From contig LSRY02000002.1 of assembly GCA_001643675.2 (NCBI GenBank), positions 930,001 to 994,000 on the forward strand: a DNA stretch of 64,000 nt, written 5' to 3'. Below, in pieces: positions 11,291 to 64,000 of this stretch. The notes beneath the pieces were generated by a model. It searched no databases. It was not told the DNA's origin and was given only the letters and a program-made list of their open reading frames with translations. The stretch is from Monocercomonoides exilis PA203 (Eukaryota; Protista; Preaxostyla). Every line of letters begins with the position of its first letter. The stretch's first letter is position 1. The position numbers were made by a program, and so were the translations under genes.

Positions 11291-14200
11291 TCAACTGGTG
11301 AATGTCAATAGACTGTCACTGCCAGTAATTCTTTCTGAATCTGCTCTATCTCCAGAACACTGCTCCACGTCAATCGCATCGGACATTGTAAGAACAGCAG
11401 CTCCAAGCGGGAAATGTTGGATAAGCACTCTTTTTATGGATGTGAGCGTTGGCCTTGCTTCAGTACTGACTGCTATGCATTCTTTTGAACATTCTCTCAG
11501 ATTGCTTTCTCCGATCATTTCGATATCTGGTCTTTCCCCATTCACAATCTTCTGCCCTGCCACCTCGGCCTCATAATCACCAAACGGGATCTGAAGTGTC
11601 AAGCACTCCCACAGCATCATCCCGATCGAGAATGAAACTGACTCTTTTGTTGCTTCCATCTTCTTGTTGATCAAAAGTTCTGGTGCCTTCCATCTCAAAC
11701 ACTCCTTTTTGTAATAATCATCATCTTCAAAGGCAGACGAGGGCAGGGAATCTTCATCATCATCATCATCAGTTGCGGATGTCACAACCGTTGATGAAGA
11801 GATAGAAGATGAGTCTGAATCATCATCTGACAACAAGTCCGAATGCATCACAATGCAGATGACCATGTGCTCTGAGAATAACACAATGTGCGGACTCAGA
11901 TTGTCCAATGACTGAAGTGGATTTTCCATTTCATCAGATGAATGAAGAGCGAGATTAGCCACCCAGAACAGAACTTGAGCTGCTGTCATCTCCCTTTCCT
12001 GAAAAGTGCCAATAGCCATTTCCTTTGTCTTATTCTTTCCATGCAGCAGCATGAACAGTGAATCCCTTAGATCCACAATCAGTTTTTCATGAGGAGACGA
12101 GCAGGCCATTGCATCTACCAGGTTTGACATGGATGAAGTGGTTGGACACAGACTCTCCGATCGAACAAATGTGGATTCTGTGTCTGAAGTGTCTGTTGTT
12201 GAAGTGGATGAAATGGATGGTGAAGGAGTTCTCTTTTGAATCTCTTCTTCCTTTTCTTCTTTCTCATCCACTTTCTCCAGCATCCATTCTGGAATCTTGT
12301 CTGAATCTCTCCCCAAGATATATTCTGTTGAACCACTCTCAGACAGAAGATGCTCGGATGATTCAGAATGCCCCAAGCTTTTCGCATACACCCTCTTCTT
12401 GATCCTCTCCTCATTCTTCTTCTCTGCCTCCCTCTCTGCTCTCCTCCACTGCTCTTCTGGCGACATCTCCATCGTCACCATCTCAAATGCCTTCGGATCC
12501 TTTCTGATGTTATCGTTCACAATCTCTCTCAGATCTTTGTTCTCGTTCTTTGCCTTCTTCCATCGAACAATGAATATCACTGCGACAATTAAAATAATCA
12601 AAAGAATAATTGCCATTGCAATAACTATTATTGGCCAAAACGACTTTCCTTCTTTTCCACTTTCAACAATTCTTTCATCTCCATTTGTTTCTGATTCGCT
12701 TCTATTTTTCAGTAGGAACGACTGTGTTGTTGAAAAAGTATTGGAATTCCCAAACAGAATGCACAAACTAACTTCAGTCTCTTCTCTCATATTCTCCAAT
12801 TGTGAAGACGTTGCGATTGTATGTATTTCATTTTCTGATAGATATCCATCTTTGTTGATCTCATGGAGTTCAATGAATTCCTCGTCTCCGCTTGTGAAGC
12901 ACAATTTCAAGGTCAGATTGCAAGGAAAAAGAAGCTCCCCAAACAGAGTCAAATTTGTTGCATTCGAGGATGTTGGTGAGCTCTTCACTTCGTGCAGCAC
13001 AGGGATAAATAGTGCCGATGGTCTCTCGCTGGCTATTCCACTCAGCTCACATCCATCATTCAAGATCCACAGTGAGGAATCTGGCAAAACTCCATCCCCT
13101 CCTTTCACACTTGCCATATCCAGCTTGGTCGAATCAGAGCACCAAATATTTCGTCGAGCTGATGGATACAACTCAATCCCTGGATTGTTGTTCACAAAGT
13201 CGCCTTTCTCGATTCTCAGAGCTCCTCCTCTTGCTGAAAGTCCACCTTCGGCAGAGTTTGTGAAAGTCGTGTCACTTATTAGTGATTTGCTTTGTACCAC
13301 ATCCACAAGCGATCCATTCCACTCGCAAATGAGGAGATTGATATTGGCCATGTGCGGCCCATCTATTTGGACTTGTTTTGCTCCATCAAACATGCATCCT
13401 TTAATCTCGATATCTTTGCAAAACAACAACGAGGCAATGCTTCCCGTTGTTTTGCATGTTTGGCATCTTGCAAACGAGCAATTGGACAATTTCGCAATGG
13501 AGTCAAATCGTTCAATTCCAATTATACTCACATCCTCTCCCTTACATGTGATATTTTCAATGAAAGAAAGCGATAAAGAAAATGAAGCTGATGAAGTATC
13601 TCCATTCGAAGTCTTGTTCTCACCTCCATTGACCGCAATAAAGCGTCCATTGCGCACTTCTACTTCTGTTACATCCAAATTTTCCATTTTTACTGCTGCC
13701 TTTCCGCTGATCTGTATAAAATCTTTTTCAATATCAACATTTTTGACAACAAAATTGTTGACTTCCGTCGACTCCTTGATGTGGATGGCATCGTCATATT
13801 CAAACGAAAGCGAAGAAATGTTCACCTTGTTCAGGAAACATTCGCCTACATCGATTGAGAACAGGCAAAATGGAAGAGATCTTTTTGATCCTCCAAGCAA
13901 GCTTCCTGCCTCAAATGAACACGAATTAAGTGTTGCCTTGCCTGAGTCCACCTTCAAGAAAGAAGTGCGTTCTGTTTGCAGCACAATCTCAAATACGAAC
14001 AGAAGGGATTGCAGCTGCACCTTGCCACTTGTGCGGATCACGAAATCCTCAGATCCCTTTATTTCTCCTTTAACAGTCACAATGCTGCCATTCTCCTGCA
14101 ATCCCCTTAACGTCAATGTTTCGAGCACAATTTCTTCGTCCACAATTGACTCCTCATCGACAAACAGCTGGCTGAAAAAATCATGAGTCAGATGCCGCAG

Positions 14201-17200
14201 CCCAAAACCGATTGTGGCGCATGGCAGCTTCGGTTTTCCACACTGCTGCTCATTGCTCCCTCTGTTCCCTTCTTTGCTCGACACCACAATGGTGTCAGAT
14301 TGATACTTCACAATCAGGTTCATCAGATCCAGCGCCTTCTCCTTGTGATCAACTTCGTCCATCCCGAATATTGCATTTTGTTTGATAAATTCTTCATCAC
14401 GGAAGTCGAGGTTGAACTGCGTTTCGTTGATCTGGCTTTCAATATGGTGGCACTCAATGAACACATCATTTCCGACTTTCGCTGTGTTTCTTCTAAAAGT
14501 CACGTTATCAAACTCAAATTTCAGTTCTCCATTCTGCCTGGTGGAAAGATGCACGCCTCCTCCTTTCCCTTCGCTCGCTGAGCATCCACATAGCGTGACA
14601 CTAGTATTCTTTAGCTTGAATGATCCTTCTTCATTCAACGCAAACAGAACTGCTCCTCCCTTTATGCTTCTCCCAGCACGACACTCTTGCCATGCACACG
14701 ATTCAATTTCAACTTTAACTCCACAAGTGCATGCGCTGCATATCAAACTTGCATCTGTGCCTTCCTCATTCACTGAAGAGAAAGTGCAATTCTTTGCAAC
14801 GATTTCGCCCGTGACATTTATTTCGTTGTTTTTGTGGCTTCTGCTTTCATCTTGCACCTTCATCAGACTTCCGCATTCAGCTTTAGTTTGTGAAACTCTG
14901 CATTCATCAAAAAAGCTCTGGACTCCAGAAAGAAATACAAAAACACTTTGCTTCGCTTCAAACGATGTGATCATGCATTTCCATAAACGCAAAATTCCCT
15001 TTTTCACAAAGCATAGAGCAGCATTATCCATTTTATCTTCGACTCCATTGGTTGACAGTGAGCAATCGTCAAATTCAAGTATTTCACCATCGCTTTCGAA
15101 TATTCCTGTTTTTCCATTTGGCTGCAAGCGATATGTGCAAATGTCAAGTTCTCTCAGTGAAAGGGTTTTGCTGTTGCTTATCAACACAGACACTGCACTT
15201 TCTTCTTTGCTCCCAATTTCAAGAGCAGAACGCACAACTTCATCTCCTCCTGAACCTTGGGACTTAACAACCAGCCCTGATAAATCGTATGAACCATCCA
15301 CTCTTGTTTTTTCTTTGATTTCCACGACCTTGCTGCTTGCATCTCCGACAATATGCTTCAGCCCCATCCACATCGACTTGCAAGGATCTTCATCACTCCC
15401 GCATCTCGCAACATCGTCTCCTTCTTCCCACACAACCGCAACTGAATTGCTGTATTCAACCAGAAATCGGAGGAGATCTGTGTTGTTCCGCTTCTCATCA
15501 GTTCCCACAAACAAATTCGAGTTGTCGTTCAACCCATCAACGCTGAATACAAATGTCTGATTTGTCACCGATTCATTCAGATCGTTGCTGAGGATAAATA
15601 TGTTTTTGCCAAGAAATGCATCATTGCCTTCGAAATGAACATTTGCAAACGCAAAAGAAATATCAGAAGCTGCCTGTTTGTTGTTCAAGAAGAGGCAACC
15701 TCCCTTGCCAAAACTACTTGTTTCAGCAGCACATCCTTTCATCTCGCAACTACTCACTTCAAACAAACAACTTCCAGATATGTTAATGTTTATCGCTCCA
15801 CCTGTGTTGCTTGCAATTGACTTCACATTTGTCATATTACACTGATCCATCTTAATTGCATTTTTTGCATCTTCGCTGAAAAGAACAGCACAATCTGCAT
15901 TTGCATTGGATAAGTCCACAAATGAGCAGTTGCTGATACTTACTATTGGCTCGCCGCATGCAATATGCTCAGCTCCAAGAAGTGACAATTCCAATACAGG
16001 CTTTAATGTTCTGATATTATGAATGGTTGTCCAATTCATAATCAATATTGTTCCACTGCTATGGATCATGGTGTATTGAATCTCTTCGCTCAACTCTTCC
16101 TGTATTTCAAAGATGCATTTCTGAACTTCCAATACTCCGTTTTGTGATGTTGAGCTGATCAAAGTGTGCTTTGTATCATCAAAGCGTTTTGGCAACTGAA
16201 GAACTGTGTTATTTATCAGAGTGTTTCCCTCAGAAATAATTACGCAATCTGACTCTCCTCCAATTGTTGACTTTATTATCACAATGATTTGGCTGTTTGT
16301 TTTGGTTTCAACACTCACACCTGTCAGATCGGTCTCCTGCTCAATTGCTGAGCATCCAGCGAGTATTATTCCTTTCTCATTATCGTCTGCAAGTCTGCAA
16401 ACTCCGTAATCCACACTTGCACATGGGCACACTTCCATGCCGCACCATATTCCATTATCTCCTGTCAGCCCATCCACTTCAATGAACAACGAGCTGTAAC
16501 CTTCGAGGAAGATGAGAAGATCAACATCATTTTCGAACTTTGATCTGTCTTTCCCCATCAGCGAGTTGTCCCTCTCAGTGATCTTTGCGTAAAATGAAAA
16601 CGTTGATGCTGTCACAGTCTTTCTCAAGTCTTGGCAGACAAGATACACATCTCTCCCACATCTTGCTTCATTCCCTTCCACATTCATTCCGGCCAAATCA
16701 AATCTCGATAATTCACCCTCAAATCCCATCCAGAGTCCTCCTCCACATCCACCTCCATTTCCTTGCTCCGTTTTTCCAGCAATGCATCTCTTTATTGATG
16801 TGGCATCACTTGTTGAACTGATTCTCAATTCTGCACTGCCTCTCATATCCATCTTCAATCCTCCTCCATTCCCTCTTTCTGCAACACAGTTTTCAATGGT
16901 TGTGTTTTCAACAACAACAATTCCACCATCAGCAATCACCCCACAAATAAACCCTCCATCTCCTGTTGACAACTTGATTCCGCTTCCATTACAATTAATC
17001 GCATGAATCTCATTTGCCTCAATTGCCTTTATCAGCCCAGAATCCGTGAACTGACAAGAACTCCAATTACACATGCTCAATCTCAACACACAACTGCTTC
17101 CTGCATAAATCAAGCTGCTTCCTTCCATGTTGCATTCGCTGGCATTCATTTCATTTGCGGTGAATGAGCCTCCATTGACAACCTCAACAAATCCATTTGC

Positions 17201-20200
17201 ACGAGAGAATGAGATATTTCTCAGATCGACATTTTCAATCACAAATTGAGAGGCATCTCCGTTTGCAGCGAAACCAGATTTCATAAATTTCATTGAGTGC
17301 AATTCCAGTGATGACACTTTCACTGTTCCTTTTTCCACAGCAAACAACGAGTATTGTATCACATTTACTCCAGTCAAATATTGAAATCCACACATATTGA
17401 ATTCCAAAGTGTCTTTTTTCAAGTAAAACAGCGTTTCATGATGCTGCAGAACTGAGGGCAAGTTCAACGCAAGATTTCTCATTGTTGTTTTGTTCAAAAC
17501 ATCAAACAATCCCTTGCAACTCTCTTCTGCACACGATGCTTCTTCGTGGATTATGAGCAACCCCCCGTCTTCAGCTGCATCAACATCTGTCTGTGTTTTG
17601 GAAAAGACAACTGTTGTGCCAACATCCACTGTGCTCTTAACTGTTATGCTTAACGGAGAGCCATTCGCTCTGTTAACTGGGAAACTCAGTGTTCTGCATT
17701 TGAAAAATGCAAAACCACAACGATGATGATCAGACCCAGAAGCAGACACTTGAATCCCACTTTGGGGCACATCTTGAGTGTAGCAAAGAATGGGGACGAT
17801 GAGTGAAGTGTTACTGGCATCGCCTATCCCTTCTGCATTACTCGGATCTTCATTTATTTGCAGGACAAATGCGAATCTCTCAACTGGGATCAACTCCAGA
17901 TGATTTGATGCAATAAACACGTTCCTCCCATGTTCTGCATGATTTCCGTTGAACACTTCATTAACAATTTCAAACACATCACTTGGCGCAGACAGCGTTA
18001 AGAACAAGCCCCCTCCTCTTCCGGTGTCACTCACTCCGATTGGATTTCCATTTCCGTTCTCAGCTCCGCAATCATGAATCTCTGTTGCAATGCCGTTTTG
18101 CCCAATCTTGAATGATCCTCCCTGAATCATACTCCAATCGAAACATCCTCCGTTTCCTTCATTGCTTGAGCAGTTTTTGAATGTCACATTTTTTATCCAA
18201 AAGAAATCACTTCTTCCGCTTGATGTGGAGAATATACCTCCATTTCCCTCTCCTTTTGAAATGTTGCTAAATGTCACATTCGTCAACATGCTTTCTCCTG
18301 TTCCACTCTCGATACATTCCTCAAAGAGCGAACAACTTGACAAGGCAGTATGCTCAATCAAGCAGTTGTCCATTTGCAATTTGGAAAAAATAATGAGAAA
18401 TAGAGGATTACTCCAAATTCTTTTGGCTGTTTCGTCAAGTCCGGAAATGGTTAAGCTTTTCAATGAGAGCATCTGTGAAGCAGGATTCATCACAAACAGT
18501 GAAGCAGAAGAATCATTGGAATTGTGACGAATGGTAACAAGCGATATTTTCATTGATCCTGAAGTCAATGTGAATAAGAATGATGAAGAATCCAGCGAGG
18601 ATGTGTTTATGATGCAATTATCAACACTTTCACCTTCAAATGACGCTTCTCCTCCATCGATGATCATTGCCGACGGGGAATATATTGAATTCAAAATGTG
18701 AACAGTCACTTTTGCGCCTCTTTCCAATGTGTTGAATGCTTTTTCAATTGTTCCACACGGTTCGTTTGACGACAACCCACATATTGTTTCTGAGATCACA
18801 TTTGCTCTGCAATATGTTGTGCGAATTGTTGGAATCCAACTATCAAATGCAGTACCACTTCCATTGTAAAATACACGATTATCTGGTGTAGTGGAAAATG
18901 ATGATTCAAATGGATTGGCATTGATAAATGGATTCAAAATTTTGATGTCATTCCCCTCGTTGCATTTGGCTTTGTTTTCAATGAAAAGACAACAAGAAAA
19001 TTTGATAGGAGGAGGATCTTCATTCATCCATTCTGTCGAATTAAGTGATATTCCTCCACCGCCACGATATTGTTCTTGTCCTGTTCCGTTAGCAACATTT
19101 TTCGAAAAAAAGCAATCAAATAACGAATATGAAAACGAATGATACTCAAAAAAAGCACCTCCTCCAAAAGTTCCAGCTTCATTGCTTTCAAAGTTACATT
19201 CACTAATCATTCCTTTCTTGGTTCCATAACTTTGATGAATGCGCATTCCACCTGCGTAATTCATTGAAGCAATACATTTGCGAAAAGAGCATTTTAATAT
19301 TTGATAGTTCCCATATAAATCATATAAAATTAGTCCTCCTGCTGTATTACTTGACACACAATTAGAGAAATTGCATTCAGTCATGTTTACGTCAGAACCA
19401 GTTTGAACATCGATTGTTCCATCGTTACGATGACTCATATTTCGAAAATTGCATCTTGTACATTCAAGAGTTGAGGAACCTCTCATATAGATAGCACTTC
19501 CATCATCATTAACACTGATATCATGCCATTCGCAATCAATGAAAACATTTGCTTCATTTGCACCAAGTTTTTGCTGCGTCATATGTTTGTTATTTGATTC
19601 AGCCACGTTGGATTGGCGAATGCAGCTTTCGAAGGTGATATTGAGAGCTGCAAGTGAAGAAGAAGGGCTATTTACAGATCTTGTAATTCCCCCATCAATA
19701 ACATCACTAACTCTACGAAAAATACAACTATCGAGCCTTGTCCAAGTTGTAATCGATTTTACCGAAGATGCAGAAGAAGCCTGAAAGGATGATGTGATGT
19801 TGCTCATAAAAATGCAGGTGGCAGAAACTGAGCAACAAATGTCTGCTGCTAGGAGCGGAGTTTTTGACATCTCAAACGATGAAAGCAACGAATCGGAAAG
19901 AGAAATGAATGCTTCTTTGTGAAATGACATTGCATTGGATGATGAACAGAATAAACCTGGAATTGGTGCGAATGAGCGAATCGAGGAAATTGAAAGATTT
20001 TTAACATCTGTCACTCCTCCATCAATCACAAAAAAACTATGTTCAGAAGAAGAAATTGCAGCACAGCTCAAGAGGAAAAGAACTGATTGCTCATTGATTC
20101 GAAAGAATGATTGGTTATTTGATGTTTTGAGGATGACACATGAGCCTTCAAGTGTTGTGTTTTGAACAGCAAAAGATCCAAGAATCGTTCCTCTTTCAGT

Positions 20201-20335
20201 TCCTTCTCGAGCAGAAAGTGATAAAGTCTGATCTAGCTCACAATCATTATTTTTCCAGTTTATTTTATCTTTCCATTTCACGGCAGAAAAGTTTGCTTGG
20301 AAGTATGCGAAGAGAATAACAGAAAATATTTTCAT
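11291..20335 (-). CDS. Giant single-pass receptor A (3014 aa): signal peptide, Cys-rich parallel beta-helix-like repeat ectodomain, one TM helix, cytoplasmic TK/TKL-like pseudokinase (C-lobe only)
   Basis: Single intronless ORF with hydrophobic N-terminus MKIFSVILFAYF. It has five CGxxxxPC-type modules ~350-425 aa apart with GG(G/A)(I/L/V) and FxxN motifs, TM segment FWPIIVIAMAIILLIILIVAVIFIV followed by RWKK, and kinase subdomain VIII-XI motifs RWKAPE, SFSIGMMLWE, IPF, RP. Confidence 0.9.
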   Translation of the reverse strand: MKIFSVILFAYFQANFSAVKWKDKINWKNNDCELDQTLSLSAREGTERGTILGSFAVQNTTLEGSCVILKTSNNQSFFRINEQSVLFLLSCAAISSSEHSFFVIDGGVTDVKNLSISSIRSFAPIPGLFCSSSNAMSFHKEAFISLSDSLLSSFEMSKTPLLAADICCSVSATCIFMSNITSSFQASSASSVKSITTWTRLDSCIFRRVSDVIDGGITRSVNSPSSSLAALNITFESCIRQSNVAESNNKHMTQQKLGANEANVFIDCEWHDISVNDDGSAIYMRGSSTLECTRCNFRNMSHRNDGTIDVQTGSDVNMTECNFSNCVSSNTAGGLILYDLYGNYQILKCSFRKCIASMNYAGGMRIHQSYGTKKGMISECNFESNEAGTFGGGAFFEYHSFSYSLFDCFFSKNVANGTGQEQYRGGGGISLNSTEWMNEDPPPIKFSCCLFIENKAKCNEGNDIKILNPFINANPFESSFSTTPDNRVFYNGSGTAFDSWIPTIRTTYCRANVISETICGLSSNEPCGTIEKAFNTLERGAKVTVHILNSIYSPSAMIIDGGEASFEGESVDNCIINTSSLDSSSFLFTLTSGSMKISLVTIRHNSNDSSASLFVMNPASQMLSLKSLTISGLDETAKRIWSNPLFLIIFSKLQMDNCLIEHTALSSCSLFEECIESGTGESMLTNVTFSNISKGEGNGGIFSTSSGRSDFFWIKNVTFKNCSSNEGNGGCFDWSMIQGGSFKIGQNGIATEIHDCGAENGNGNPIGVSDTGRGGGLFLTLSAPSDVFEIVNEVFNGNHAEHGRNVFIASNHLELIPVERFAFVLQINEDPSNAEGIGDASNTSLIVPILCYTQDVPQSGIQVSASGSDHHRCGFAFFKCRTLSFPVNRANGSPLSITVKSTVDVGTTVVFSKTQTDVDAAEDGGLLIIHEEASCAEESCKGLFDVLNKTTMRNLALNLPSVLQHHETLFYLKKDTLEFNMCGFQYLTGVNVIQYSLFAVEKGTVKVSSLELHSMKFMKSGFAANGDASQFVIENVDLRNISFSRANGFVEVVNGGSFTANEMNASECNMEGSSLIYAGSSCVLRLSMCNWSSCQFTDSGLIKAIEANEIHAINCNGSGIKLSTGDGGFICGVIADGGIVVVENTTIENCVAERGNGGGLKMDMRGSAELRISSTSDATSIKRCIAGKTEQGNGGGCGGGLWMGFEGELSRFDLAGMNVEGNEARCGRDVYLVCQDLRKTVTASTFSFYAKITERDNSLMGKDRSKFENDVDLLIFLEGYSSLFIEVDGLTGDNGIWCGMEVCPCASVDYGVCRLADDNEKGIILAGCSAIEQETDLTGVSVETKTNSQIIVIIKSTIGGESDCVIISEGNTLINNTVLQLPKRFDDTKHTLISSTSQNGVLEVQKCIFEIQEELSEEIQYTMIHSSGTILIMNWTTIHNIRTLKPVLELSLLGAEHIACGEPIVSISNCSFVDLSNANADCAVLFSEDAKNAIKMDQCNMTNVKSIASNTGGAININISGSCLFEVSSCEMKGCAAETSSFGKGGCLFLNNKQAASDISFAFANVHFEGNDAFLGKNIFILSNDLNESVTNQTFVFSVDGLNDNSNLFVGTDEKRNNTDLLRFLVEYSNSVAVVWEEGDDVARCGSDEDPCKSMWMGLKHIVGDASSKVVEIKEKTRVDGSYDLSGLVVKSQGSGGDEVVRSALEIGSKEESAVSVLISNSKTLSLRELDICTYRLQPNGKTGIFESDGEILEFDDCSLSTNGVEDKMDNAALCFVKKGILRLWKCMITSFEAKQSVFVFLSGVQSFFDECRVSQTKAECGSLMKVQDESRSHKNNEINVTGEIVAKNCTFSSVNEEGTDASLICSACTCGVKVEIESCAWQECRAGRSIKGGAVLFALNEEGSFKLKNTSVTLCGCSASEGKGGGVHLSTRQNGELKFEFDNVTFRRNTAKVGNDVFIECHHIESQINETQFNLDFRDEEFIKQNAIFGMDEVDHKEKALDLMNLIVKYQSDTIVVSSKEGNRGSNEQQCGKPKLPCATIGFGLRHLTHDFFSQLFVDEESIVDEEIVLETLTLRGLQENGSIVTVKGEIKGSEDFVIRTSGKVQLQSLLFVFEIVLQTERTSFLKVDSGKATLNSCSFEAGSLLGGSKRSLPFCLFSIDVGECFLNKVNISSLSFEYDDAIHIKESTEVNNFVVKNVDIEKDFIQISGKAAVKMENLDVTEVEVRNGRFIAVNGGENKTSNGDTSSASFSLSLSFIENITCKGEDVSIIGIERFDSIAKLSNCSFARCQTCKTTGSIASLLFCKDIEIKGCMFDGAKQVQIDGPHMANINLLICEWNGSLVDVVQSKSLISDTTFTNSAEGGLSARGGALRIEKGDFVNNNPGIELYPSARRNIWCSDSTKLDMASVKGGDGVLPDSSLWILNDGCELSGIASERPSALFIPVLHEVKSSPTSSNATNLTLFGELLFPCNLTLKLCFTSGDEEFIELHEINKDGYLSENEIHTIATSSQLENMREETEVSLCILFGNSNTFSTTQSFLLKNRSESETNGDERIVESGKEGKSFWPIIVIAMAIILLIILIVAVIFIVRWKKAKNENKDLREIVNDNIRKDPKAFEMVTMEMSPEEQWRRAEREAEKKNEERIKKRVYAKSLGHSESSEHLLSESGSTEYILGRDSDKIPEWMLEKVDEKEEKEEEIQKRTPSPSISSTSTTDTSDTESTFVRSESLCPTTSSMSNLVDAMACSSPHEKLIVDLRDSLFMLLHGKNKTKEMAIGTFQEREMTAAQVLFWVANLALHSSDEMENPLQSLDNLSPHIVLFSEHMVICIVMHSDLLSDDDSDSSSISSSTVVTSATDDDDDEDSLPSSAFEDDDYYKKECLRWKAPELLINKKMEATKESVSFSIGMMLWECLTLQIPFGDYEAEVAGQKIVNGERPDIEMIGESNLRECSKECIAVSTEARPTLTSIKRVLIQHFPLGAAVLTMSDAIDVEQCSGDRADSERITGSDSLLTFTS

Positions 20336-20943: not shown

Positions 20944-21057
20944 TGTTAATTAAAGTTCATCAAAAAGGGAAATAGTAAATTATTAATTTGTTGGATTGAC
21001 CATCAATGTTTAACACGCAATTATAAACTAAATCTTGCAATTGATCATTCAAATAGT

Positions 21058-27002: not shown

Positions 27003-27038
<36 letters not shown>

Positions 27039-28592: not shown

Positions 28593-28674
<82 letters not shown>

Positions 28675-43807: not shown

Positions 43808-43838
<31 letters not shown>

Positions 43839-53923: not shown

Positions 53924-56900
53924 TCAACGAGAATCAGTGATAAAATGGATGCTTGTTGTTGAACAAGATTCGCTTCCCGACCTGCCACTTTCATTGATTC
54001 TGCGATCCCCGTCATAGCCAGTATTAAGTCCTATTGCATCAGAAACTGTGAGCATCACAGCTCCAGCTGGAAAGCGTTGGATAAACTCCCGCTTCAGCTC
54101 GTTCAGAGATGGTCTTTCCTCTGCTGATTGTTTTTTGCACCTTCCAATCAACCCACAAAGTGAACTTCCTTCAATGGCTTTACAACCCTGCCTTTCTCCA
54201 TTGGCAATCTTCTGTCCAGCCACTTCTGCCTCATACTCCCCAAACGGGATCTGAAGTGTCAAACATTCCCAAAGCATCATCCCAATCGAGAATGACACTG
54301 ACTCCTTTGTTGCTTCCATCTTCTTGTTGATCAGCAGCTCAGGCGCCTTCCACCTCAGACACTCTTTTTTGTAATAATCATCATCCTCAAAAGCCGAAGA
54401 AGGCAGAGAGTCACTATCATCATCATCGTCATCGCTTGTTGATGTCACAACAGTCGATGAAGAGATGGAAGACGAGTCTGAATCATCAGATGAAAGGAAA
54501 TCAGAGTGCATCACAATGCAGATCACCATATGCTCTGAGAACAGCACAATGTGCGGACTGAGATTATTCAATGACTGAAGCGGGTTTTCCATTTCGTCAA
54601 ACGAATGAAGAGCGAGGTTAGCCACCCAGAACAGGATTTGGGCAGCTGTCTGCTCCCTTTCCTTCAAGGAGCCAATAGCCATCTCCTTTGACTTATTCCT
54701 TCCATGCAGTAGCATGAACAGTGAGTCCCTCAAATCAACAATCAGCTTTTCATGAGGAGATGAACATGCCATCGCATCCACAAGATTCGACATTGATGAG
54801 GTGGTTGGACACAGACTCTCCGATCGAACAAATGTGGATTCTGTGTCTGAAGTGTCTGTTGTTGAAGTGGATGAAATGGAAGGAGATGGTGATCTCTTTT
54901 GAATCTCTTCTTCCTTTTCTTCTTTCTCATCCACTTTCTCCAGCATCCATTCTGGAATCTTGTCTGAATCTCTTCCAAGAATGTATTCAGTGGAGCCGCT
55001 CTCAGACAGAAGATGCTCGGATGATTCAGAATGTCCCAGACTTTTCTCATAAACTCTCTTCTTTATCCTTTCCTCATTCTTCTTCTCTGCCTCTCTTTCT
55101 GCTCTCCTCCACTGCTCTTCAGGTGATATCTCCATTGTCACCATCTCAATCAGCTTTGGATCCTTCTTCACTGTATCATTCACAATCTCTCTCAGATCTT
55201 CTGCTTCATTCTTCACCTTTCTCCATCGAACAACAAATATCACAAGTGAGATAAGAACAACCAACAATATCGCAGAAAGCACAATCACTACCAACAACCA
55301 TGAAGATTTTCCTTCCTTTCCTCCTTCAACAATTCTTTCATCTCCATTTGTTTTTGGTTCGCTTCTGTTTTTCAGAATGAAAGAATCAGTTGAAAATGGA
55401 TTATTTACATCCCCAAACAGAATGCTCACACTCATTTCGGTCTCTTCTCTACAGCTGCTGATCAGCTCTTTCTCCACACTCCCTTTCACTTCAGTCTCTG
55501 ATATGCACCCTTCCTCCAGAAATGAATACTTCACAATCTCTTTCTCATCCCTAATGTGCTTCACAACCATGAATGACAGGTTGCATGGGAGAAGAAGAGT
55601 GCCTCTGAAAACAATATTCAATGTTCCTTCTTTCTCCTCTGTTTCAACTGATCGAAGTGTGGGGATGAACAACACTGATTCTCGCTCTGATCCAATCCCA
55701 CTCATCGCACATCCATCATTCAGAATCCATAGAGAAGAACCATCTTTTATCCCGTCTCCACCTTTCAGACTCTTCACATCCAGTGTGCCTGAACCAGAGC
55801 AAATAATGTTCCTTCTCACAGAAGGATATTTTGTTATTGATGGATTGTTGTTCAATAATTCTCCTTTCTCGATTGTCACTTCCCCACCAGAAACAGACAG
55901 TGCTCCATCATGTGCATTCCATATCGTTGTGTCTCTCACTTTCCCTTCACTCTCAGATATGTCTGCAACAGATCCATTCCACCTGCATATCTCCTCAGCT
56001 GCATCTGCATTCACCTTCAAAGTGCTTTCTGTCTCGCTCCCATCAATTTTGCACCCATCCAACACAACCTTCCTGCTCTTCCACACCCCAATCACACTTC
56101 CCTTTGCTCCTGAGCTCTGGCACGTCTCAAATGAACAGTTAGACAGCTCCAACTTTGCTCCCTCGCATCGGCTCGTCACTGCTGCTGCTCTCTCTCCAGC
56201 ACTCGAGATGTTCACAAACACAGCTCGACTCACTTGCACAATGTCAGCTCCCTCTCCACTTGCTGCTTCCTCCATCTCCACCACTGACCCCTTCTCCGTC
56301 CTCATCCCATCTGCCTTCAACTCGTCAATCACCATGCTCCCTTCTCTCACCACTATCCCTCCTCCTTGGCACTCAACATTCAATATCCTCAGCTGTCTCA
56401 CAATCACATCTCCTCCACACCTCAGCAAGCACTCACCACACACATCCTCTATTTCGCACCCCCTCATCTCCAGTTTCCCACTTGCACACTTCATGAGAAT
56501 AGGAACTGATGCCTTGTGTCCATCTCCTTCCAATGAACTAAATCTCACACGATCAAACATCACATTCCCTTCCTCCATCCAGAAGAGACTTGTGTGTGAT
56601 GTGAGGAAGACTCGCGGCATCTTGAACCCCACCAGCTCCACAGCAGTGCTCCCTCCAACACCAATCATATATTCCCGAGTGCTGGTTATGCCTGTCCCAA
56701 TCTTCACACTCGCCACCTCCCAGCTCTTCGACCTCACCACCATGCTCAAAATATCTATCTCCATCTCCACTTCGCTCTCCCCGTCCACTGCTAGCATCGA
56801 GTTGAACTCTGCCACCACATGATCCAGTCCATATCCCAATGTCAGACACGGCTGCTCCACTGTCCCGCACTTCCGCCAGTTCCTGCCGCCTTTCCCAAGC

Positions 56901-59900
56901 ACACTCGACACCACAATCGTTGCTGCCTGATATACTGTGATCAGATCCATCAGGTTCACTGGCGTATCGCTCCGCTTGTCCACCCCGAAGATTGCATTCC
57001 CTTGGATATACACCTCCTGCCGCAGATCCATCTTAAACTGGCTCTCGTTGATCTGCCTACTGATGTTCACACACTCAACAAAGATGTCCCGCCCCACAAA
57101 CGCGTTGTTCCCGCTCAACGACATCCTCTCAAACACAAAGTTCAGATCTCCTCCAAGTTCTGTCCCCAGATACACTCCGCCTCCCCGCCCTTGCGTTATC
57201 GAACAGCTGCTTTGCACAATCTTCCCTCCCTTCATCCGGAACTCACCTCCCTCATTCAGCTGGAACTCCACCACTCCGCCTTTCTTGCTCTCTCCTGCCT
57301 TGCATGACTCGAATGTGCTCTCATTCACCACCACCTTCACACTCCCTCCACACACTCTCTCCACAACACACGGCCCATCATCCTCCCGCTCCGCCATCAC
57401 AAATGTCGATCCATTCACTGTCACACTCGTTCCACTCATCCCTCCTGCATTTTCCAATCTACCGATATCATTCAAACTGCTGCTCACAACACTGATTGCA
57501 CACCCCTCGTGATACTCCTGCGAGCTCATCCGCACCTCCCTCAGATTGCAGCTTACCCCTTCAAACACCATCACCACACAGCCCTTCACCTTCATTCGCT
57601 CAAATCTCACATCCTCCACCACCAATGCCCCTGCTTTCACAACAACAACCGATCCACACAACTTCCCGCTAGATCCCGCTCCTCCAATCACACATCTTTC
57701 CATTTCCAGCAGTGTTCCTCCTCCACTCAAAATCTCTTTCTTCTCCACTCCACCTGAACCCCCAACCACCATCTTCATCCTCCGAACACACAGCGTCCCA
57801 GTGTATGTGATGAACGGATCCTCGCTCAACACACTCTCCCCTCCTTTTCCACTGAATACAAGCTCATCCTTCACATCCTCCTCCTCTCTTTCTCCTCCCA
57901 CACCACTCACAACCATATTCTTCATTGTCCAGTCATCCTCCACTCTCGCCTCTCCTCCAACAACTATTTCTTTCATCTCCTCCGTCCTTTCCACTTGCTC
58001 CATCCCCTTCCACAGCGTCTCACATGGATCATTCACACTTCCACACCGCATCACATCCTGCCCTTCTGAACTCACATGTATCTTCCGGCTCTTGTATCCC
58101 ACAACATATCGCAGGAGATCTGTCTCGTTCCTGCTTTCATCGTTCCCAACAAATCCGTTCCCGTTCTCTTTCATCCCCTGATAGTCAAATCCAAACGAAG
58201 TTGTTGTCACAGTTTTGTTCAGATCTCTTGCCAAAACAAACATATGCTCACCAACTTTTGCCCTGTTCAATTTGAACGTAACCTCTTTCAGCTCAAACGA
58301 CTGATCAATCAACGACCCTGAGCAATCCACAAACAAAAACCCTCCTCTCCCAAATGCAACTGAGCACTCGCATTCTTCTGCTGTTGTGTTCTTCAGCACC
58401 AAAATCTGTTCACCCTTCACAATCATTTTCATCCCTCCTCCCTCCTTCTCTTCTGGTGCTTTCACCTTCTTCATTGTGCAATCTTCAATCATCACACTCG
58501 ATCTGAACTCAAAGGCACTCTCACTGAATGTTGCCTTTTCTATCGAACATCCAACGAGCTCCACCTTTCCACCTATTGCCTTCATCACTCCATATCCCAT
58601 CACACTTCCACTCTCAAACTGGAATATGCAATCCGTCATGCTCAATGTCCCTTCTTCTGTCTCCGAAAGCAGCACCACTTCCTGCCCACTTGCAATCATC
58701 CCTGGTAGAACAAACACGACCCCTTCAAATCCTGCTCTCCTGTTGTTCTCAAATACACATTTCCCATCTCCTCCACTGATCTCCTCCCCAACCTCCATCA
58801 CACACCTTGTGACTGCTCCTGTTCCTGCCCCATTGCACACCGTTCTTATCCCCGACACATCAAACCAATCTGCAACCCTCATCTCCCCTTTCGCCATGAT
58901 CTTTGCTCCCTCAACTATTTCACGATCTGCATTCTTCATCCCTCTCCAATATGTCTCACATGGCATTTTCTCACTCCCACATCCTATCATGTCACATCCG
59001 CCTTCTCTCACATGCACTTCTCCCCACTTATGTTCCACCAGAAACACTACAAGATCTACTGCCTCCTCAACAAATCGCACCCGATCCACTCCTTTCATAT
59101 CAACAATCACCTCCCCTTCTCCGTTCTTCACTGCAAACCGAAATCGAGATCGAGTCACTGTCTTGTTCAGATCATCACACTCCACAAACACATCTCTTCC
59201 ATATGCTCCTGCGTTCTCTGCAAACTCAAGCCCATCAAAATTCATATCTCCCATTCTTGAGCTTGCAACATTCAAATATATCCCTCCACCTCTTCCACTT
59301 TCACCATTTACAGAACACCTCTTAAACACTACATCTGTGATGCACAAGCTGCTTCCTTCACTTACTTCGAAGTGCACTCCTCCTCCATCCACATGTGTCG
59401 ATCGACATCCATTGAATATGCTGCCTTCTGTAATCTCCAAACTTCTCACATTCTCCATCCACACCACTCCCCCATCTGTCACATCCACTTCCTCCACGCA
59501 TCCCTTGTGCATCCCAAACTCAGCCTCTCCACTCCCTTCAATCAACCCCTTCCCCGTTCCTCCAACATTCGATATGTTCGTGTTGTTCATGATGATCATT
59601 CCTCCCTCCATCTTCACAAAGCCTCCATCCACTCCAAAATTTTCATCTTCCACTGAAACTTGATTCATCCGGACCTCTCCTCCAGTTTCACTTACTATCC
59701 TCATTCCCGTCTCCCATCTCACATCAGCTCCTGCTTCCTCTCCTCCAGCATCTGTTCCTGAACTTGCCCCAAACACACAGTTCATCACAATCACCACGCC
59801 CACACTCACACTAATCATCCCATCCACTTCCTCTGATGCCACCATTGGCAGTCTGAAATTCAGGCGACTGAGTGACAGTGTTGTTTGCGAGTATCCAATG

Positions 59901-62900
59901 CTTTGTTTGAAGCATCCATGTACTCTTATCTCCAAGCTGCATCCAGCACTTTTCCCTCGCACTGCCAGCGATTTCCCCTTCCGATCAATCACATTATCCA
60001 TCCAGTTTCCGTTGTTCATCTGGATCGTCGTCTTCTCCTCCCCCATGTTCATAAACCCATCGATGAACCTGTCACAAGGTGACACCTCGCTTCCACACGA
60101 ATCGGCTACTGTGCTCCTCCCTGCCTCCACATACACAATCGCCCCTTCCACAGGGAACAGATACTTCTTCACTGACAAGTCGATCACTGTGTTTGTCACC
60201 GAGTCAATTACCCACACATTCACCTCTGGCGTGCTCTCCTCATCCACTGTCCCCACCCACAGATCCTCACGAAGCATCACCTCTGGCTCACCACACACAA
60301 CAAACACATCCAGTCCCTTTGCTGCAGCATTCCACTCAAACACATCCTCTCGAAGCGAGTACTTCGCCTCCCTATCCTCCAGCTCCATAAACACTCCTCC
60401 TCCATATCCTGCTGTTCCCACCACTGCACACCTCTCCACTCTGTTCGAATCAAACACAAATTCCCCTTTCCCTGCAACACTCACAAACACACATCCTCCA
60501 CAAGACGGATTCCCCATGCATACATCCTGCACAAATGTGCTCTCCTTCACCTCCACTTTCTGCCCTTCTCCCACTCTCCCTGCAAACACACCCCCATTTC
60601 CACTCTTCCGTGTCTTTCCCTCCACGCTGATGTTCTTTGCCCCAACACTCGCCCTTTCTTCAAACACAACAACACTTCCATCATCCATTGTTGTTCCCTT
60701 CACTGTGCTGTTTTCCACCCTCAGTGCCGATCCCTCCCTCACACAAATTAGCCCACTTTCTGCTCCACAAACAACATTCTCCATCTCCAATCCTTCAAAC
60801 GCCCCATCACCTCCACACAACTCAAACAACTCAAATTCCACTGTGTTCATGTTTGCCATCTTCAACCCATCCACAATCACTTTTCCTCCACTCGCTTTTA
60901 TCAATGAATACTTCATTTTCAACTGCCCATTCACTTGCTCCACCTGGCAGTTCTCCAGCTCAAGCTCCCCTCCTTTGCACGCAAACAGACACTCCCATCT
61001 GGCTCCCGAAAACTCGTTGGGAACAGAAAATGATATATTCTTCACAAATACATTCACTCTGGTTTCCAACAGCCCTTCTCCCTCCCCTGCTCCATCATCA
61101 CGAACCAGAACACTCGTCTCTCCATCCTGAACAACCCCTTTCAATTTCACTCCCTGCGATTCAAGCACTACATGGTCTTTCAGCTCAAATGATTCCATCG
61201 CCACCACTTCTCCACTTCCAACTACTCCTCCAAAACGCACTTTCAGCGCCTGTTCAATTGTTCGACAGGGAGCATATGCCATTCCACAACCTGAATGATC
61301 ATATCCCCAATCTGACGCTCCTCCAACATATGCTGTTCCACCAAACTGATCAAGATATGCACCAAGTGGAATTCCAAAAGTATCACCTGTTGAGCAACGC
61401 TCATATCCCATTAGATCCCTCATCTCCATCCCACAATTCTCAAAATTCAATGAGTCTCCACTCACAATAACACTCAAATTCCTCCCTTCCACAAACACAT
61501 TCTTCCCCTTCCACGCTTTGCACCCCTCAAACTCCAGCCCTTTCAATTCAAACCCACTCACTCCATCCGAACACAACAAATACACACCTCCTCCCAATCC
61601 TCTCCCTTCTCCTCCTTCTCCTTCAGGCACTTCACATCCTTCAAACTTTGTCCCCTCTATCACCACTTCTGCTCCCTCACCCTGCCTCACAATCATCCCT
61701 CCTCCTCGAAGCCCATTCCCACCTCTGCACTTTCCTTTGATCGTGCAATTCTCCACATGGACATCTCGCAATTGACCAGGTCCACTCTCCACTCCAATGC
61801 ACCCTCCATCTCCTCCTCTGTGCCAAGCACAGCCAAAAACACTGTTGTTCACCTTCATCTTCCCGCCTCCTCCAATATCAATTGGCACTCCCACAAACCC
61901 TATTTCCCCGCTTCCCTCAACCACAAACTTATCCAATACCACTCCGCCTCCCTCAACTTTCAACAGCCCACCATTCACACCATCCAACACCTCTTCGCCA
62001 GATAGCCTCATCACACACCACATCATCTCCAAATCACCTCCCACACACTCAATCAAACTACCCACTGCTTCACTCTTCACCAACACCCCAAATGTGCAGT
62101 TTGCCATCTGTGTTTCTGTTGCTGTGTGAATCATCCCATTCCCAACCCCCGCCTCTCCCCACACCACATTCACATTTGTTCCTCTCTCCACGCCCTTCAG
62201 CTCCCACTTCCATCCGCTCATCTCCACCTTCTCGCTCCAGCTGAACCCTTCATTCACAATTATCTTCTTCTCGCTGTTCGCAAACCTCAATCCAACCAGC
62301 TTCCCAATAGTCGCACATTCATATCCTTCAAACCCACACCCTGAAAAGTCTCGCTCATTCACTCCTCCAACATACCCTGCAATGCCTTCAACTTCAACCA
62401 TGAAAAACATCAGCGGAATCAGAAAACTCTCATCACCATCTTCAAACCCCATCGCCTCTCTCACTCTCCCTTTATCTGTCGCAATCACTCCCACAAACCC
62501 TTCACTTCCCACTGCTTCACTCAGATCTTCAGCTTGTACAAAAACATTGTCTCCTCCTCTCGCTGCTTCATTCTTCCCCACACCTGTCCCAAACACCACT
62601 CCACACACCTCATGATCCCATCGTTTTGATCCACTGCCTCCCTCCATTTTCAAAAACATCCCTCCTCCACATCCTCCAACTCCTTCACTCAAACTGCTCC
62701 TGCACTTTTCAACCAGTGTTTCTTCCTCGCTCCTCCCTATTCGAAAATATCCTCCTGCTTCTATCTCCATACACACTCCACCTCCACATCCTTTCTCCAC
62801 ACAACACACAGAAAAGCTGCTGTTTCCAATCGCAACGCTCTCCCCATCTCCAATCATGCACCGCACTCCACTCCCATTCCCTGCTGTGCTCTCAATCCCG

Positions 62901-64000
62901 CTGAATGTGCACTTCTCCATCTCCAGATCGCTCCCTCCTCTCCCAACCACAATCCCACTCAACGAGCATGCAATCTCCTCAAATTTCGTCTGCTCAACAA
63001 CAAGCTTCCCACTGGATGCATAATATACCAATCCATTTTCACATTCCACTGTTCCTCCACTAATGTTTGTCTGGGAAATTAACCCTTCTCCATTATTGCT
63101 CACACAGACCATGCAGCTCCCCCCAAAGCTCAGCCCACTCGCTTCCACCTGTTGCACGCTCATCTTGCCTCCTCTGCATCGCATAACTACATATCCGATC
63201 CTCTCTCCTTCTCCTCCCTCGAAATTACACTGTCTCACCTCCACACTCCCACTCCGACACGCAATCACGCTTCTTCCCTCACCCACACTTGCTGGAAGCG
63301 ATATCACAAGATTCACAATCGTTGTTGTTGCTCCAGCTGTTGTGAACACTCCCTCTGCTCTCCCACTCTCACTGCTCTCTATCACCACTCGAGGTGGAGA
63401 TGCTTGTCCTTTCACCACAACAACTCCATTCATAAGTTCAACCTCGCCTTTCACGACCGCCCCGCTGTTCGCCACAACTGTTATCCCTGCCCCAGTTCCA
63501 TGCTTCCTGATCGCATAATCCACACTCGCACACTGCACATCTCCAAATCCACACATCTCCCAGTCTCTCTTGTTCAGCCCTCCAACATAGTATTCGCTTG
63601 GCTTGCTCCGCAGATACACCACAAGTGGAATAACATTCACTTCATCGCCATTCTCATATCCACACACCTCACTCAGATTGCTTTCATCAATCGCAAACTT
63701 CAGCCGCTCTCTCTTCGCCACCTCTGCCAATCGAGGCGCTCTCATGAACAGCTTGCTCCCTGCCTTTGTTGCCGCACACCCTGCAAACGATGCTTTATCA
63801 ATCACAAAATCATATCCTCCTTCCTTCACTTCAATCATCATCCCTCCTCCACATCCTCCTCCACTGCTCTGCCCTTCTCTCGCCTCACACCCACCAAACA
63901 AAACTTCGCTCTCATTCCCCACACGAGCACGGGCCCCCGATTCCATCCTAATTGCCATTCCTCCTCCGTTCCCGCTCTCACATCTGCATCCCTGCATCGT
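53924..64000 (-). CDS. Giant single-pass receptor B (>3357 aa, 5'-partial), paralogue of receptor A
   Basis: The intronless ORF is open to the window end. It has at least seven CGxxxxPC-type modules, TM segment WLLVVIVLSAILLVVLISLVIFVV followed by RWRK, and a cytoplasmic region nearly identical to receptor A including DDDYYKKECLRWKAPE. Confidence 0.9.
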   Translation of the reverse strand, partial: TMQGCRCESGNGGGMAIRMESGARARVGNESEVLFGGCEAREGQSSGGGCGGGMMIEVKEGGYDFVIDKASFAGCAATKAGSKLFMRAPRLAEVAKRERLKFAIDESNLSEVCGYENGDEVNVIPLVVYLRSKPSEYYVGGLNKRDWEMCGFGDVQCASVDYAIRKHGTGAGITVVANSGAVVKGEVELMNGVVVVKGQASPPRVVIESSESGRAEGVFTTAGATTTIVNLVISLPASVGEGRSVIACRSGSVEVRQCNFEGGEGERIGYVVMRCRGGKMSVQQVEASGLSFGGSCMVCVSNNGEGLISQTNISGGTVECENGLVYYASSGKLVVEQTKFEEIACSLSGIVVGRGGSDLEMEKCTFSGIESTAGNGSGVRCMIGDGESVAIGNSSFSVCCVEKGCGGGVCMEIEAGGYFRIGRSEEETLVEKCRSSLSEGVGGCGGGMFLKMEGGSGSKRWDHEVCGVVFGTGVGKNEAARGGDNVFVQAEDLSEAVGSEGFVGVIATDKGRVREAMGFEDGDESFLIPLMFFMVEVEGIAGYVGGVNERDFSGCGFEGYECATIGKLVGLRFANSEKKIIVNEGFSWSEKVEMSGWKWELKGVERGTNVNVVWGEAGVGNGMIHTATETQMANCTFGVLVKSEAVGSLIECVGGDLEMMWCVMRLSGEEVLDGVNGGLLKVEGGGVVLDKFVVEGSGEIGFVGVPIDIGGGGKMKVNNSVFGCAWHRGGDGGCIGVESGPGQLRDVHVENCTIKGKCRGGNGLRGGGMIVRQGEGAEVVIEGTKFEGCEVPEGEGGEGRGLGGGVYLLCSDGVSGFELKGLEFEGCKAWKGKNVFVEGRNLSVIVSGDSLNFENCGMEMRDLMGYERCSTGDTFGIPLGAYLDQFGGTAYVGGASDWGYDHSGCGMAYAPCRTIEQALKVRFGGVVGSGEVVAMESFELKDHVVLESQGVKLKGVVQDGETSVLVRDDGAGEGEGLLETRVNVFVKNISFSVPNEFSGARWECLFACKGGELELENCQVEQVNGQLKMKYSLIKASGGKVIVDGLKMANMNTVEFELFELCGGDGAFEGLEMENVVCGAESGLICVREGSALRVENSTVKGTTMDDGSVVVFEERASVGAKNISVEGKTRKSGNGGVFAGRVGEGQKVEVKESTFVQDVCMGNPSCGGCVFVSVAGKGEFVFDSNRVERCAVVGTAGYGGGVFMELEDREAKYSLREDVFEWNAAAKGLDVFVVCGEPEVMLREDLWVGTVDEESTPEVNVWVIDSVTNTVIDLSVKKYLFPVEGAIVYVEAGRSTVADSCGSEVSPCDRFIDGFMNMGEEKTTIQMNNGNWMDNVIDRKGKSLAVRGKSAGCSLEIRVHGCFKQSIGYSQTTLSLSRLNFRLPMVASEEVDGMISVSVGVVIVMNCVFGASSGTDAGGEEAGADVRWETGMRIVSETGGEVRMNQVSVEDENFGVDGGFVKMEGGMIIMNNTNISNVGGTGKGLIEGSGEAEFGMHKGCVEEVDVTDGGVVWMENVRSLEITEGSIFNGCRSTHVDGGGVHFEVSEGSSLCITDVVFKRCSVNGESGRGGGIYLNVASSRMGDMNFDGLEFAENAGAYGRDVFVECDDLNKTVTRSRFRFAVKNGEGEVIVDMKGVDRVRFVEEAVDLVVFLVEHKWGEVHVREGGCDMIGCGSEKMPCETYWRGMKNADREIVEGAKIMAKGEMRVADWFDVSGIRTVCNGAGTGAVTRCVMEVGEEISGGDGKCVFENNRRAGFEGVVFVLPGMIASGQEVVLLSETEEGTLSMTDCIFQFESGSVMGYGVMKAIGGKVELVGCSIEKATFSESAFEFRSSVMIEDCTMKKVKAPEEKEGGGMKMIVKGEQILVLKNTTAEECECSVAFGRGGFLFVDCSGSLIDQSFELKEVTFKLNRAKVGEHMFVLARDLNKTVTTTSFGFDYQGMKENGNGFVGNDESRNETDLLRYVVGYKSRKIHVSSEGQDVMRCGSVNDPCETLWKGMEQVERTEEMKEIVVGGEARVEDDWTMKNMVVSGVGGEREEEDVKDELVFSGKGGESVLSEDPFITYTGTLCVRRMKMVVGGSGGVEKKEILSGGGTLLEMERCVIGGAGSSGKLCGSVVVVKAGALVVEDVRFERMKVKGCVVMVFEGVSCNLREVRMSSQEYHEGCAISVVSSSLNDIGRLENAGGMSGTSVTVNGSTFVMAEREDDGPCVVERVCGGSVKVVVNESTFESCKAGESKKGGVVEFQLNEGGEFRMKGGKIVQSSCSITQGRGGGVYLGTELGGDLNFVFERMSLSGNNAFVGRDIFVECVNISRQINESQFKMDLRQEVYIQGNAIFGVDKRSDTPVNLMDLITVYQAATIVVSSVLGKGGRNWRKCGTVEQPCLTLGYGLDHVVAEFNSMLAVDGESEVEMEIDILSMVVRSKSWEVASVKIGTGITSTREYMIGVGGSTAVELVGFKMPRVFLTSHTSLFWMEEGNVMFDRVRFSSLEGDGHKASVPILMKCASGKLEMRGCEIEDVCGECLLRCGGDVIVRQLRILNVECQGGGIVVREGSMVIDELKADGMRTEKGSVVEMEEAASGEGADIVQVSRAVFVNISSAGERAAAVTSRCEGAKLELSNCSFETCQSSGAKGSVIGVWKSRKVVLDGCKIDGSETESTLKVNADAAEEICRWNGSVADISESEGKVRDTTIWNAHDGALSVSGGEVTIEKGELLNNNPSITKYPSVRRNIICSGSGTLDVKSLKGGDGIKDGSSLWILNDGCAMSGIGSERESVLFIPTLRSVETEEKEGTLNIVFRGTLLLPCNLSFMVVKHIRDEKEIVKYSFLEEGCISETEVKGSVEKELISSCREETEMSVSILFGDVNNPFSTDSFILKNRSEPKTNGDERIVEGGKEGKSSWLLVVIVLSAILLVVLISLVIFVVRWRKVKNEAEDLREIVNDTVKKDPKLIEMVTMEISPEEQWRRAEREAEKKNEERIKKRVYEKSLGHSESSEHLLSESGSTEYILGRDSDKIPEWMLEKVDEKEEKEEEIQKRSPSPSISSTSTTDTSDTESTFVRSESLCPTTSSMSNLVDAMACSSPHEKLIVDLRDSLFMLLHGRNKSKEMAIGSLKEREQTAAQILFWVANLALHSFDEMENPLQSLNNLSPHIVLFSEHMVICIVMHSDFLSSDDSDSSSISSSTVVTSTSDDDDDDSDSLPSSAFEDDDYYKKECLRWKAPELLINKKMEATKESVSFSIGMMLWECLTLQIPFGEYEAEVAGQKIANGERQGCKAIEGSSLCGLIGRCKKQSAEERPSLNELKREFIQRFPAGAVMLTVSDAIGLNTGYDGDRRINESGRSGSESCSTTSIHFITDSR

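Follow-up and report, generated by a model that had tools for sequence, protein, structure and literature searches.

The VSPs of Giardia are encoded by many genes and combine variable, Cys-rich ectodomains with a near-invariant transmembrane (TM) segment and a five-residue tail (CRGKA), and their exclusive expression has been shown. In Entamoeba histolytica, the surface protein PATMK acts in phagocytosis and may be a pseudokinase (PMC2211552), while in trichomonads about 90% of the expressed Pmps have a TM domain (PMC11166332, PMC10715098, PMC6701047). For the oxymonad Monocercomonoides exilis, protein tyrosine kinases have been reported as the largest gene family, with 332 genes, 320 of them tyrosine-kinase-like (TKL) (PMC6759080), and as overlapping with unclassified repeats (PMC8767320); we found no mention of an ectodomain, beta-helix modules or catalytic loss in the literature searched on this family (PMC6759080, PMC8767320). 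The present analysis concerns a window of 64,000 nucleotides (nt) from M. exilis PA203, that is, the whole stretch of DNA analysed (contig LSRY02000002.1; C14:930001-994000), and two giant genes within it, denoted receptor A and receptor B. With a probability of roughly 0.78, they represent a family of about 940 genes for giant type I beta-helix proteins, whose dead-kinase tail is kept alike by selection together with gene conversion.

Receptor A is a complete, intronless, single open reading frame (ORF) at 11291-20335, encoding 3014 amino acids (aa) plus the stop codon, on the minus strand, as are all the parts of A and B given below. Receptor B extends from a stop codon at 53924 beyond the window end, so that its 3' 10 kb (53924..64000) lie inside; with the next 5 kb added, the uninterrupted ORF reaches 4190 aa from the first ATG and ends at extended window coordinate 66496 (C14:996496). 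A gap of 33.6 kb separates the start of A from the stop of B, and the initial annotation was right to describe two same-strand, intronless giant genes about 34 kb apart. Since both proteins have a hydrophobic N-terminus and one strongly hydrophobic segment with basic residues after it, A and B are predicted from sequence to be type I membrane proteins. In A, a signal-peptide-like hydrophobic segment (MKIFSVILFAYFQANFSAV, read from the sequence with no predictor) occupies residues 1-19 (20279..20335), and the ectodomain, residues 1-2566 (12638..20335), is divided into six modules by CG..C junction motifs. The TM helix (residues 2567-2590; 12566..12637), the sole 19-aa window above 2.2 in Kyte-Doolittle hydropathy, is followed by RWKKAK. 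The conserved tail core comes next (residues 2591-2936; 11528..12565), showing long invariant blocks in an alignment of 26 paralogues and comprising a juxtamembrane helix, Ser/Thr/Asp-rich linkers, and the region of the degenerate catalytic loop, up to and including APE and the helix after it. Overlapping it, a putative remnant of the C-terminal kinase lobe (C-lobe), from APE to subdomain XI, is placed by Pfam PF07714 at residues 2876-2970 (11426..11710), and a variable C-terminal segment that tracks ectodomain lineage completes the protein (residues 2937-3014; 11294..11527). The corresponding parts of B are a TM helix at residues 3733-3756 (55229..55300, from hydropathy) and a cytoplasmic tail with a putative C-lobe remnant (53927..55228, from PF07714 and alignment to A).

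The initial annotation treated A and B as a two-receptor system, but they are two ordinary members among about 940 paralogues, and the identity of their tails is the family norm. Over the 82.3-Mb, 101-contig M. exilis assembly, the tail pattern GSTEYILG, back-translated, has 942 matches and the reversed control 0, far from the few copies that would have spoken against a repertoire. Searching the tail protein against its own genome gave 90 scored matches, from 1467 first-look candidates, at 75-85% identity and mostly within open frames of 2100-4235 aa, and all the matches listed in a search of the protein database are M. exilis proteins. The features by which the family is defined, a TM-tail block 75-85% identical and tandem modules delimited by CG..PC, are both found. 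Gene lengths cluster near 2600, 3050 and 4100 aa, and such discrete classes suggest a small set of architectures, each with its own number of modules, and not a continuous range. At the scale of the family, the broader proposal thus holds: modular beta-helical ectodomains, in a large and diversified repertoire, are combined with a cytoplasmic tail that is conserved.

Many family genes come in inverted pairs that face each other tail to tail at a distance of about 5-6 kb and have identical motif DNA, as at the tail-motif matches C1:2067(+)/7783(-), C1:75376(+)/81047(-), C1:189328(+)/195028(-) and C6:727138(+)/732106(-). Other inverted pairs are L015/L019 (C6, 4.4 kb apart), with identical tail cores and different ectodomains; L021/L022 (20 kb apart), whose tails and proximal ectodomains are identical; and the near-identical L012/L013 (44 kb apart). 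These pairs look like recent palindromic duplications. Another copy, L004 (C6:1154906-1156312), is close to the ectodomain lineage of A and has one in-frame TAA in the tail and an open frame of 1478 aa, which indicates that the family also holds decaying copies.

The module junctions of A fall at residues 519, 873, 1298, 1645 and 2032, giving modules 1-6 at 18782-20335, 17720-18781, 16445-17719, 15404-16444, 14243-15403 and 12638-14242, and those of B at residues 633, 982, 1387, 1737, 2134, 2506, 2818 and 3210, giving nine modules. Of the earlier counts, "at least 7" for B stands, with seven complete modules and part of another in the window and nine in the full gene, and 5 for A has to be raised to six. 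The junction motifs quoted in the initial annotation were located at A 1645 (RCGSDEDPC), B 2818 (RCGSVNDPC), A 2032 (QCGKPKLPC) and B 3210 (KCGTVEQPC). The two ectodomains are, as had been proposed, collinear but heavily diverged: identity is 18-45% per 100-aa bin, and the three membrane-proximal modules pair one to one (A 1298-1644, 1645-2031 and 2032-2544 with the B modules that begin at 2506, 2818 and 3210; 109, 181 and 250 bits), the extra modules of B being distal. Both ectodomains are enriched in NxS/T sites (48 in A, 32 expected), as would be expected of extracellular domains, and each has three CxxC motifs in its 2545-3715 aa. The motifs that had prompted comparison with beta-helical adhesins both occur above expectation, FxxN 18 times in one ectodomain (10.6 expected) and 11 times in the other (6.7 expected), but GGA[ILV] only three times per ectodomain (0.2-0.7 expected), the more frequent motif being GGG[ILVM].

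The beta-helical fold guessed from these motifs was borne out by modeling of A module 5 (residues 1645-2031; 14243..15403). Built with 62 diverse module sequences, the AlphaFold2 (AF2) model consists entirely of short strands and is of high confidence (pLDDT 88.7, pTM 0.88). Its Foldseek matches in PDB are weak (best E 2.6e-3) and all beta-helices; in VIA-align, PL6 lyases, phage tailspikes, the passenger of the autotransporter Vag8 and the adhesin PfbA reach Z 21-22 across 250-312 residues; and a fold search of a structure atlas gives TM-scores of 0.68-0.74 to clusters with Chlam_PMP or Beta_helix repeats. As modeled, A module 5 is a right-handed parallel beta-helix, and the common junction and end motifs suggest that the remaining modules are also beta-helices. 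At the sequence level, none of the 62 modules has a significant Pfam match (Chlam_PMP in 3/62, best E 0.15; Beta_helix in 1/62), and no PDB sequence matches the 62-module profile at E up to 1. The modules therefore resemble Pmps in shape without belonging to the Pmp family by sequence. When A residues 1645-2031 were searched exhaustively with HMMER, 221 clusters were returned; the ten that were identified further comprise seven M. exilis proteins (up to 7937 aa), one partial protein of Streblomastix strix, and two entries without a name (from ENA and Logan). The S. strix protein (KAA6367142.1, P0267, partial, 568 aa), from a termite-gut oxymonad, shares the module end GRDIFV...NAVYG...CGKIQLPCLTLNYG and the CG..PC junction, and this signature indicates that the module type predates M. 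exilis, as far as sequence can tell.

The juxtamembrane-to-kinase regions described as near-identical are indeed so, with 88.6% protein identity over 378 aa; within them, A residues 2601-2900 are 91-94% identical to B in protein and 85-88% in DNA, and over the last ~110 aa of the tails the identity is 59%. The initial annotation took the tail for a kinase, but only a C-lobe is detectable in it. PF07714 (PK_Tyr_Ser-Thr) scores above its curated cut-off (E 5e-8 in A, 9.5e-9 in B), with a match limited in both to profile positions 164-257 of 258, and a profile of 26 tails finds in PDB the C-lobes of ZAK, ILK (the second-best match) and TAK1 at E about 1e-5, again over the same C-lobe part only. 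Language-model features of the tail likewise indicate kinase fragments. Across the 26 paralogue tails, APE and the following helices are invariant; no N-terminal lobe (N-lobe) with a Gly-rich loop or VAIK lysine was found, profile positions 1-163 being uncovered and the stretch from the TM helix to the C-lobe consisting, in the 26-tail alignment, of a charged helix and Ser/Thr/Asp-rich low-complexity linkers. At the places of HRDLKxxN and DFG, in a manual alignment, the tails have an invariant NLSPH..L and a nearly invariant V.HSD, and neither the catalytic HRD Asp, the catalytic-loop Asn nor the DFG Asp was found at these manually aligned positions in any of the 26. With no N-lobe, HRD or DFG, such a tail cannot be an enzyme, and it is best described as a predicted, catalytically dead remnant of a TKL kinase C-lobe. 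"Signaling" by a tail lacking the catalytic motifs can mean scaffolding or docking only. Among short motifs, NPx[YF], YxxPhi, DxF and [DE]xxxL[LI] were not found in the A tail, where acidic clusters only were seen.

What keeps the tails alike emerges from divergence by region. Between A and B, nonsynonymous divergence (dN) in the tail core is 0.056 and synonymous divergence (dS) 0.75, a dN/dS of 0.07, as against 0.25-0.48 in the ectodomains, where synonymous sites are saturated; so low a ratio at this dS points to purifying selection and not to recent copying. A tree built from the membrane-proximal 500 aa places A beside genes from C49, C1 and C6 (86% identity), the partner of B being C14:662988 (89%). 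The last ~55 tail codons give the same groups, the C-terminal segment of A being 95.6% identical in nt to its sister L002 and 51.6% to B. Between these two regions the affiliations change: the juxtamembrane segment pairs A with L025 (96% nt), and the middle tail segment joins A to B with a support of 99. Along a sliding window, A and L002 are mostly 85-97% identical in the ectodomain (down to 76% in the final window before the TM helix) and mostly 85-99% in the 1.5-kb 3' flank (with dips to 67-79%), and their identity falls to 63-87% precisely between the TM helix and tail residue ~392. Five sister pairs have a dS of 0.13-0.36 in the ectodomain, 0-0.22 in the C-terminal segment and 0.56-1.34 in the tail core, so that tail-core synonymous divergence between sister genes is 2-8 times that of the flanks. 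For the 435 pairs among 30 genes, median tail-core identity is 82.3% and is uncorrelated with ectodomain identity (Spearman rho 0.02, p 0.68); it stays at 77-87.5% wherever ectodomains are less than 95% identical, with L015/L019 as the sole exception.

The tail core of A is, in addition, a mosaic. Triplet max-chi-square values of 100-130 were equalled in 0 of 200 permutations, and genome-wide best matches differ from segment to segment: the TM and juxtamembrane part is closest to L025 (91%), tail nt 331-600 to B (92% nt, with a sliding-window peak of 97%), and the 576 nt past nt 600 to many copies tied at 86%. The ectodomain sisters of A are missing from the top-40 match lists of all three segments. 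The patch whose best match is B lies at 12104..12373, its counterpart in B at 54768-55036, the two genes being 42 kb apart and oriented alike. The simplest reading is that the tail core is a family-wide pool of frequent ectopic gene conversion, and A and B share one old converted patch. Such conversion, limited to the part that all copies have in common, would make sisters drift apart there and hold unrelated copies together. Tail and ectodomain histories are thus incongruent and synonymous divergence non-uniform, as a variable-ectodomain, constant-tail family had been supposed to show. Purifying selection and ordinary ectopic conversion account for the constancy of the tail, and a dedicated variable/constant joining mechanism is unneeded.

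Transcription of A, which the initial annotation had asked after, is indicated by four metatranscriptome runs from one study, available as contigs and queried with the 5' part of the gene (5901 letters). The runs contain 60-74% of the sampled words from this 5' 5.9 kb, and their contigs cover 16000-20343, ending about at the A start codon, with none in the same four runs on the AT-rich intergenic DNA upstream (window 20531-21900). Contigs on coding DNA and none upstream form the pattern expected of RNA rather than of contaminating DNA. Some contigs are only 95-99% like A, and close paralogues of A are presumably expressed too. Contigs at 17208-17611 and 16319-16709 differ from A by 7-20 positions per 390-404 nt.

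Taken together, a family protein consists of a signal-peptide-like N-terminus, six to nine beta-helix modules of about 350-500 aa that each begin with CG..PC, a single TM helix, and about 420-435 aa of tail, the ordered part of which is, on sequence grounds, the C-lobe of a TKL kinase, its N-lobe and catalytic residues having been lost. Strong purifying selection acts on the tail protein, and frequent ectopic conversion is, in the simplest reading, limited to the core from TM helix to C-lobe, the sole stretch similar enough across copies to recombine; gene pairs thereby end up about 82% identical in the tail core regardless of ectodomain kinship. The chains of beta-helices may act as glycan- or surface-binding adhesin or sensor domains directed toward bacteria or the host gut, and the dead-kinase tail as a common docking, trafficking or phospho-scaffold module instead of an enzyme. 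As to function, our best inference is that of an adhesin or sensor whose tail serves for docking, and adhesion specifically stands at about even odds.

Several points weigh against this account. That the proteins are exposed at the surface, bind ligands and have partners for the tail is something that we infer. The pairwise statistics come from 30 of the ~940 copies, picked as the best tail matches to A. For tail residues 111-300, approximately unbiased (AU) tests do not reject that A groups with the sisters of its ectodomain (p 0.085) or that B groups with L005 (p 0.27), and since these are not significant, the case for mosaic tails rests on contrasts in dS, on the sliding windows and triplet tests, and on the best matches across the genome. 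For the tail, AF2 modeling with the 26 paralogues reached a pLDDT of 38, which leaves absence of the N-lobe to sequence and profile coverage, and the degenerate catalytic loop was placed by manual alignment. The RNA runs stem from a single study and exist as contigs, from which expression level and strand cannot be read.

How far do other explanations reach? Were these proteins active receptor kinases, working like the receptor-like kinases of plants or the receptor tyrosine kinases of animals, with a ligand at the ectodomain setting off phosphotransfer in the tail, the TKL-like tail that passes the Pfam cut-off for PK_Tyr_Ser-Thr and the published annotation as protein tyrosine kinases (PMC6759080) would follow naturally; but with a match restricted to positions 164-257 of 258, and the Gly-rich loop, VAIK, HRD and DFG absent while APE and the later helices are retained, we regard this as very improbable. 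Even less can be said for the opposite extreme, a non-functional, decaying repeat with long ORFs kept by chance, to which we give next to no credence: the family does overlap the RepeatModeler "unclassified repeats" (PMC8767320), and truncation or a stop codon affects some copies (L004, with one TAA, is an example; open frames of 585-1700 aa), but most scored copies retain frames of 2100-4235 aa, dN/dS is 0.07 in the tail and 0.25-0.48 in the ectodomain, and RNA-library contigs fall on A. A dedicated system that deliberately recombines ectodomain cassettes onto one signaling tail might be read from the grouping of mosaic breakpoints near the TM helix and tail residue ~392. These are, however, the points at which similarity between copies starts and stops, where homology-dependent conversion would be predicted to break, and the patches are short, old (86-97% identity) and from many donors, which makes such a system scarcely credible. 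Recombination signal sequences were not seen either, no search aimed at them having been made.

A variant surface coat deserves more attention, although we consider it unlikely. Each cell would then express a single gene, or a small number, out of the ~940, much as Giardia does with its VSPs or trypanosomes with their VSGs, the shared tail serving sorting and recombinational switching. The combination of a variable outside and a constant inside, the huge copy number and the frequent conversion between copies all fit, as does the gut endobiont lifestyle that PMC12308965 gives for M. exilis. Against it, the conversion tracts observed lie in the tail rather than amounting to ectodomain replacement, and the bulk RNA, with A and its 95-99%-alike close paralogues, fits with or without exclusivity. 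A related and somewhat more doubtful idea is that the TM-tail core serves as a handle for recombination and sorting, common to all members of a system for varying ligands or antigens, in which conversion and crossover starting in the tail would move whole ectodomain arrays between loci or expression states; if true, cells would show a changing subset of ~940 beta-helix receptors, a repertoire like that of VSGs or VSPs but based on a dead kinase, in a mitochondrion-less commensal. Beta-helix surface proteins whose dead-kinase tails are held alike by selection and ordinary conversion remain the reading that we favor.

Elsewhere in the window, ORFs neighboring the receptors are eukaryotic genes of ordinary kinds, encoding an Atg4-type peptidase C54, an M16 peptidase and a steroid reductase. 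The M16 (insulinase-like) peptidase, at 4051-8546 on the minus strand, seems split into ORFs at 5862-8546, 4913-5890 and 4051-4911, which may reflect introns or frameshifts. Three plus-strand ORFs between A and B gave no Pfam match: 29915-36820 (2301 aa), extremely rich in Glu and Asp and of low complexity; 39881-47596 (2571 aa), rich in Pro and Ser; and the adjoining 47886-50411 (841 aa). To the eye, all three are unlike the receptor family. The DNA of 29915-36820 has a strong purine skew (AT skew +0.39, GC skew +0.2 to +0.3).

The identity proposed for this family changes how the M. exilis genome is read, with giant surface proteins in place of tyrosine kinases or unclassified repeats; if most copies are near full length, they would make up, by our estimate, about a tenth of the genome. 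The proteins are candidate machinery for the contact of an oxymonad with bacteria and host, and they offer a natural example of a kinase C-lobe retained as a stand-alone module, along with a clean case in which the most conserved protein segment has the most synonymous divergence between recent duplicates.

Compared with the systems described at the outset, the family shares with Giardia VSPs its many genes, a variable ectodomain, and a near-invariant TM segment and tail. The role proposed for the tail in M. exilis would have an analogue in TKL receptor or scaffold pseudokinases such as ILK, where a kinase-derived domain is retained for binding; those pseudokinases, however, keep a full bilobal fold, whereas the M. 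exilis tail has no detectable N-lobe. With chlamydial Pmps and the Pmp-like proteins of Trichomonas (PMC11166332, PMC10715098, PMC6701047) it shares the right-handed beta-helix adhesin fold, but A and B have no autotransporter barrel and end instead in one TM helix and a cytoplasmic tail, and, unlike either group of proteins, the family has several beta-helices in tandem and a kinase remnant within its tail of about 420-435 aa. The TMKs of Entamoeba histolytica (PATMK/TMK96; PMC2211552) are likewise a multigene type I surface family of a gut protist that lives anaerobically, and in them, too, a variable ectodomain is joined through a single TM helix to a cytoplasmic domain resembling a kinase. 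No Entamoeba protein is among the listed tail and module matches (10 of the module hits were identified further; TMK sequences were not compared directly). The ectodomain of PATMK has 25 CXXC motifs (PMC2211552), as against three in each of those of A and B, which have a beta-helix fold, and, unlike the Entamoeba TMKs, the M. exilis family comprises about 940 copies, with proteins reaching 2500-4200 aa.

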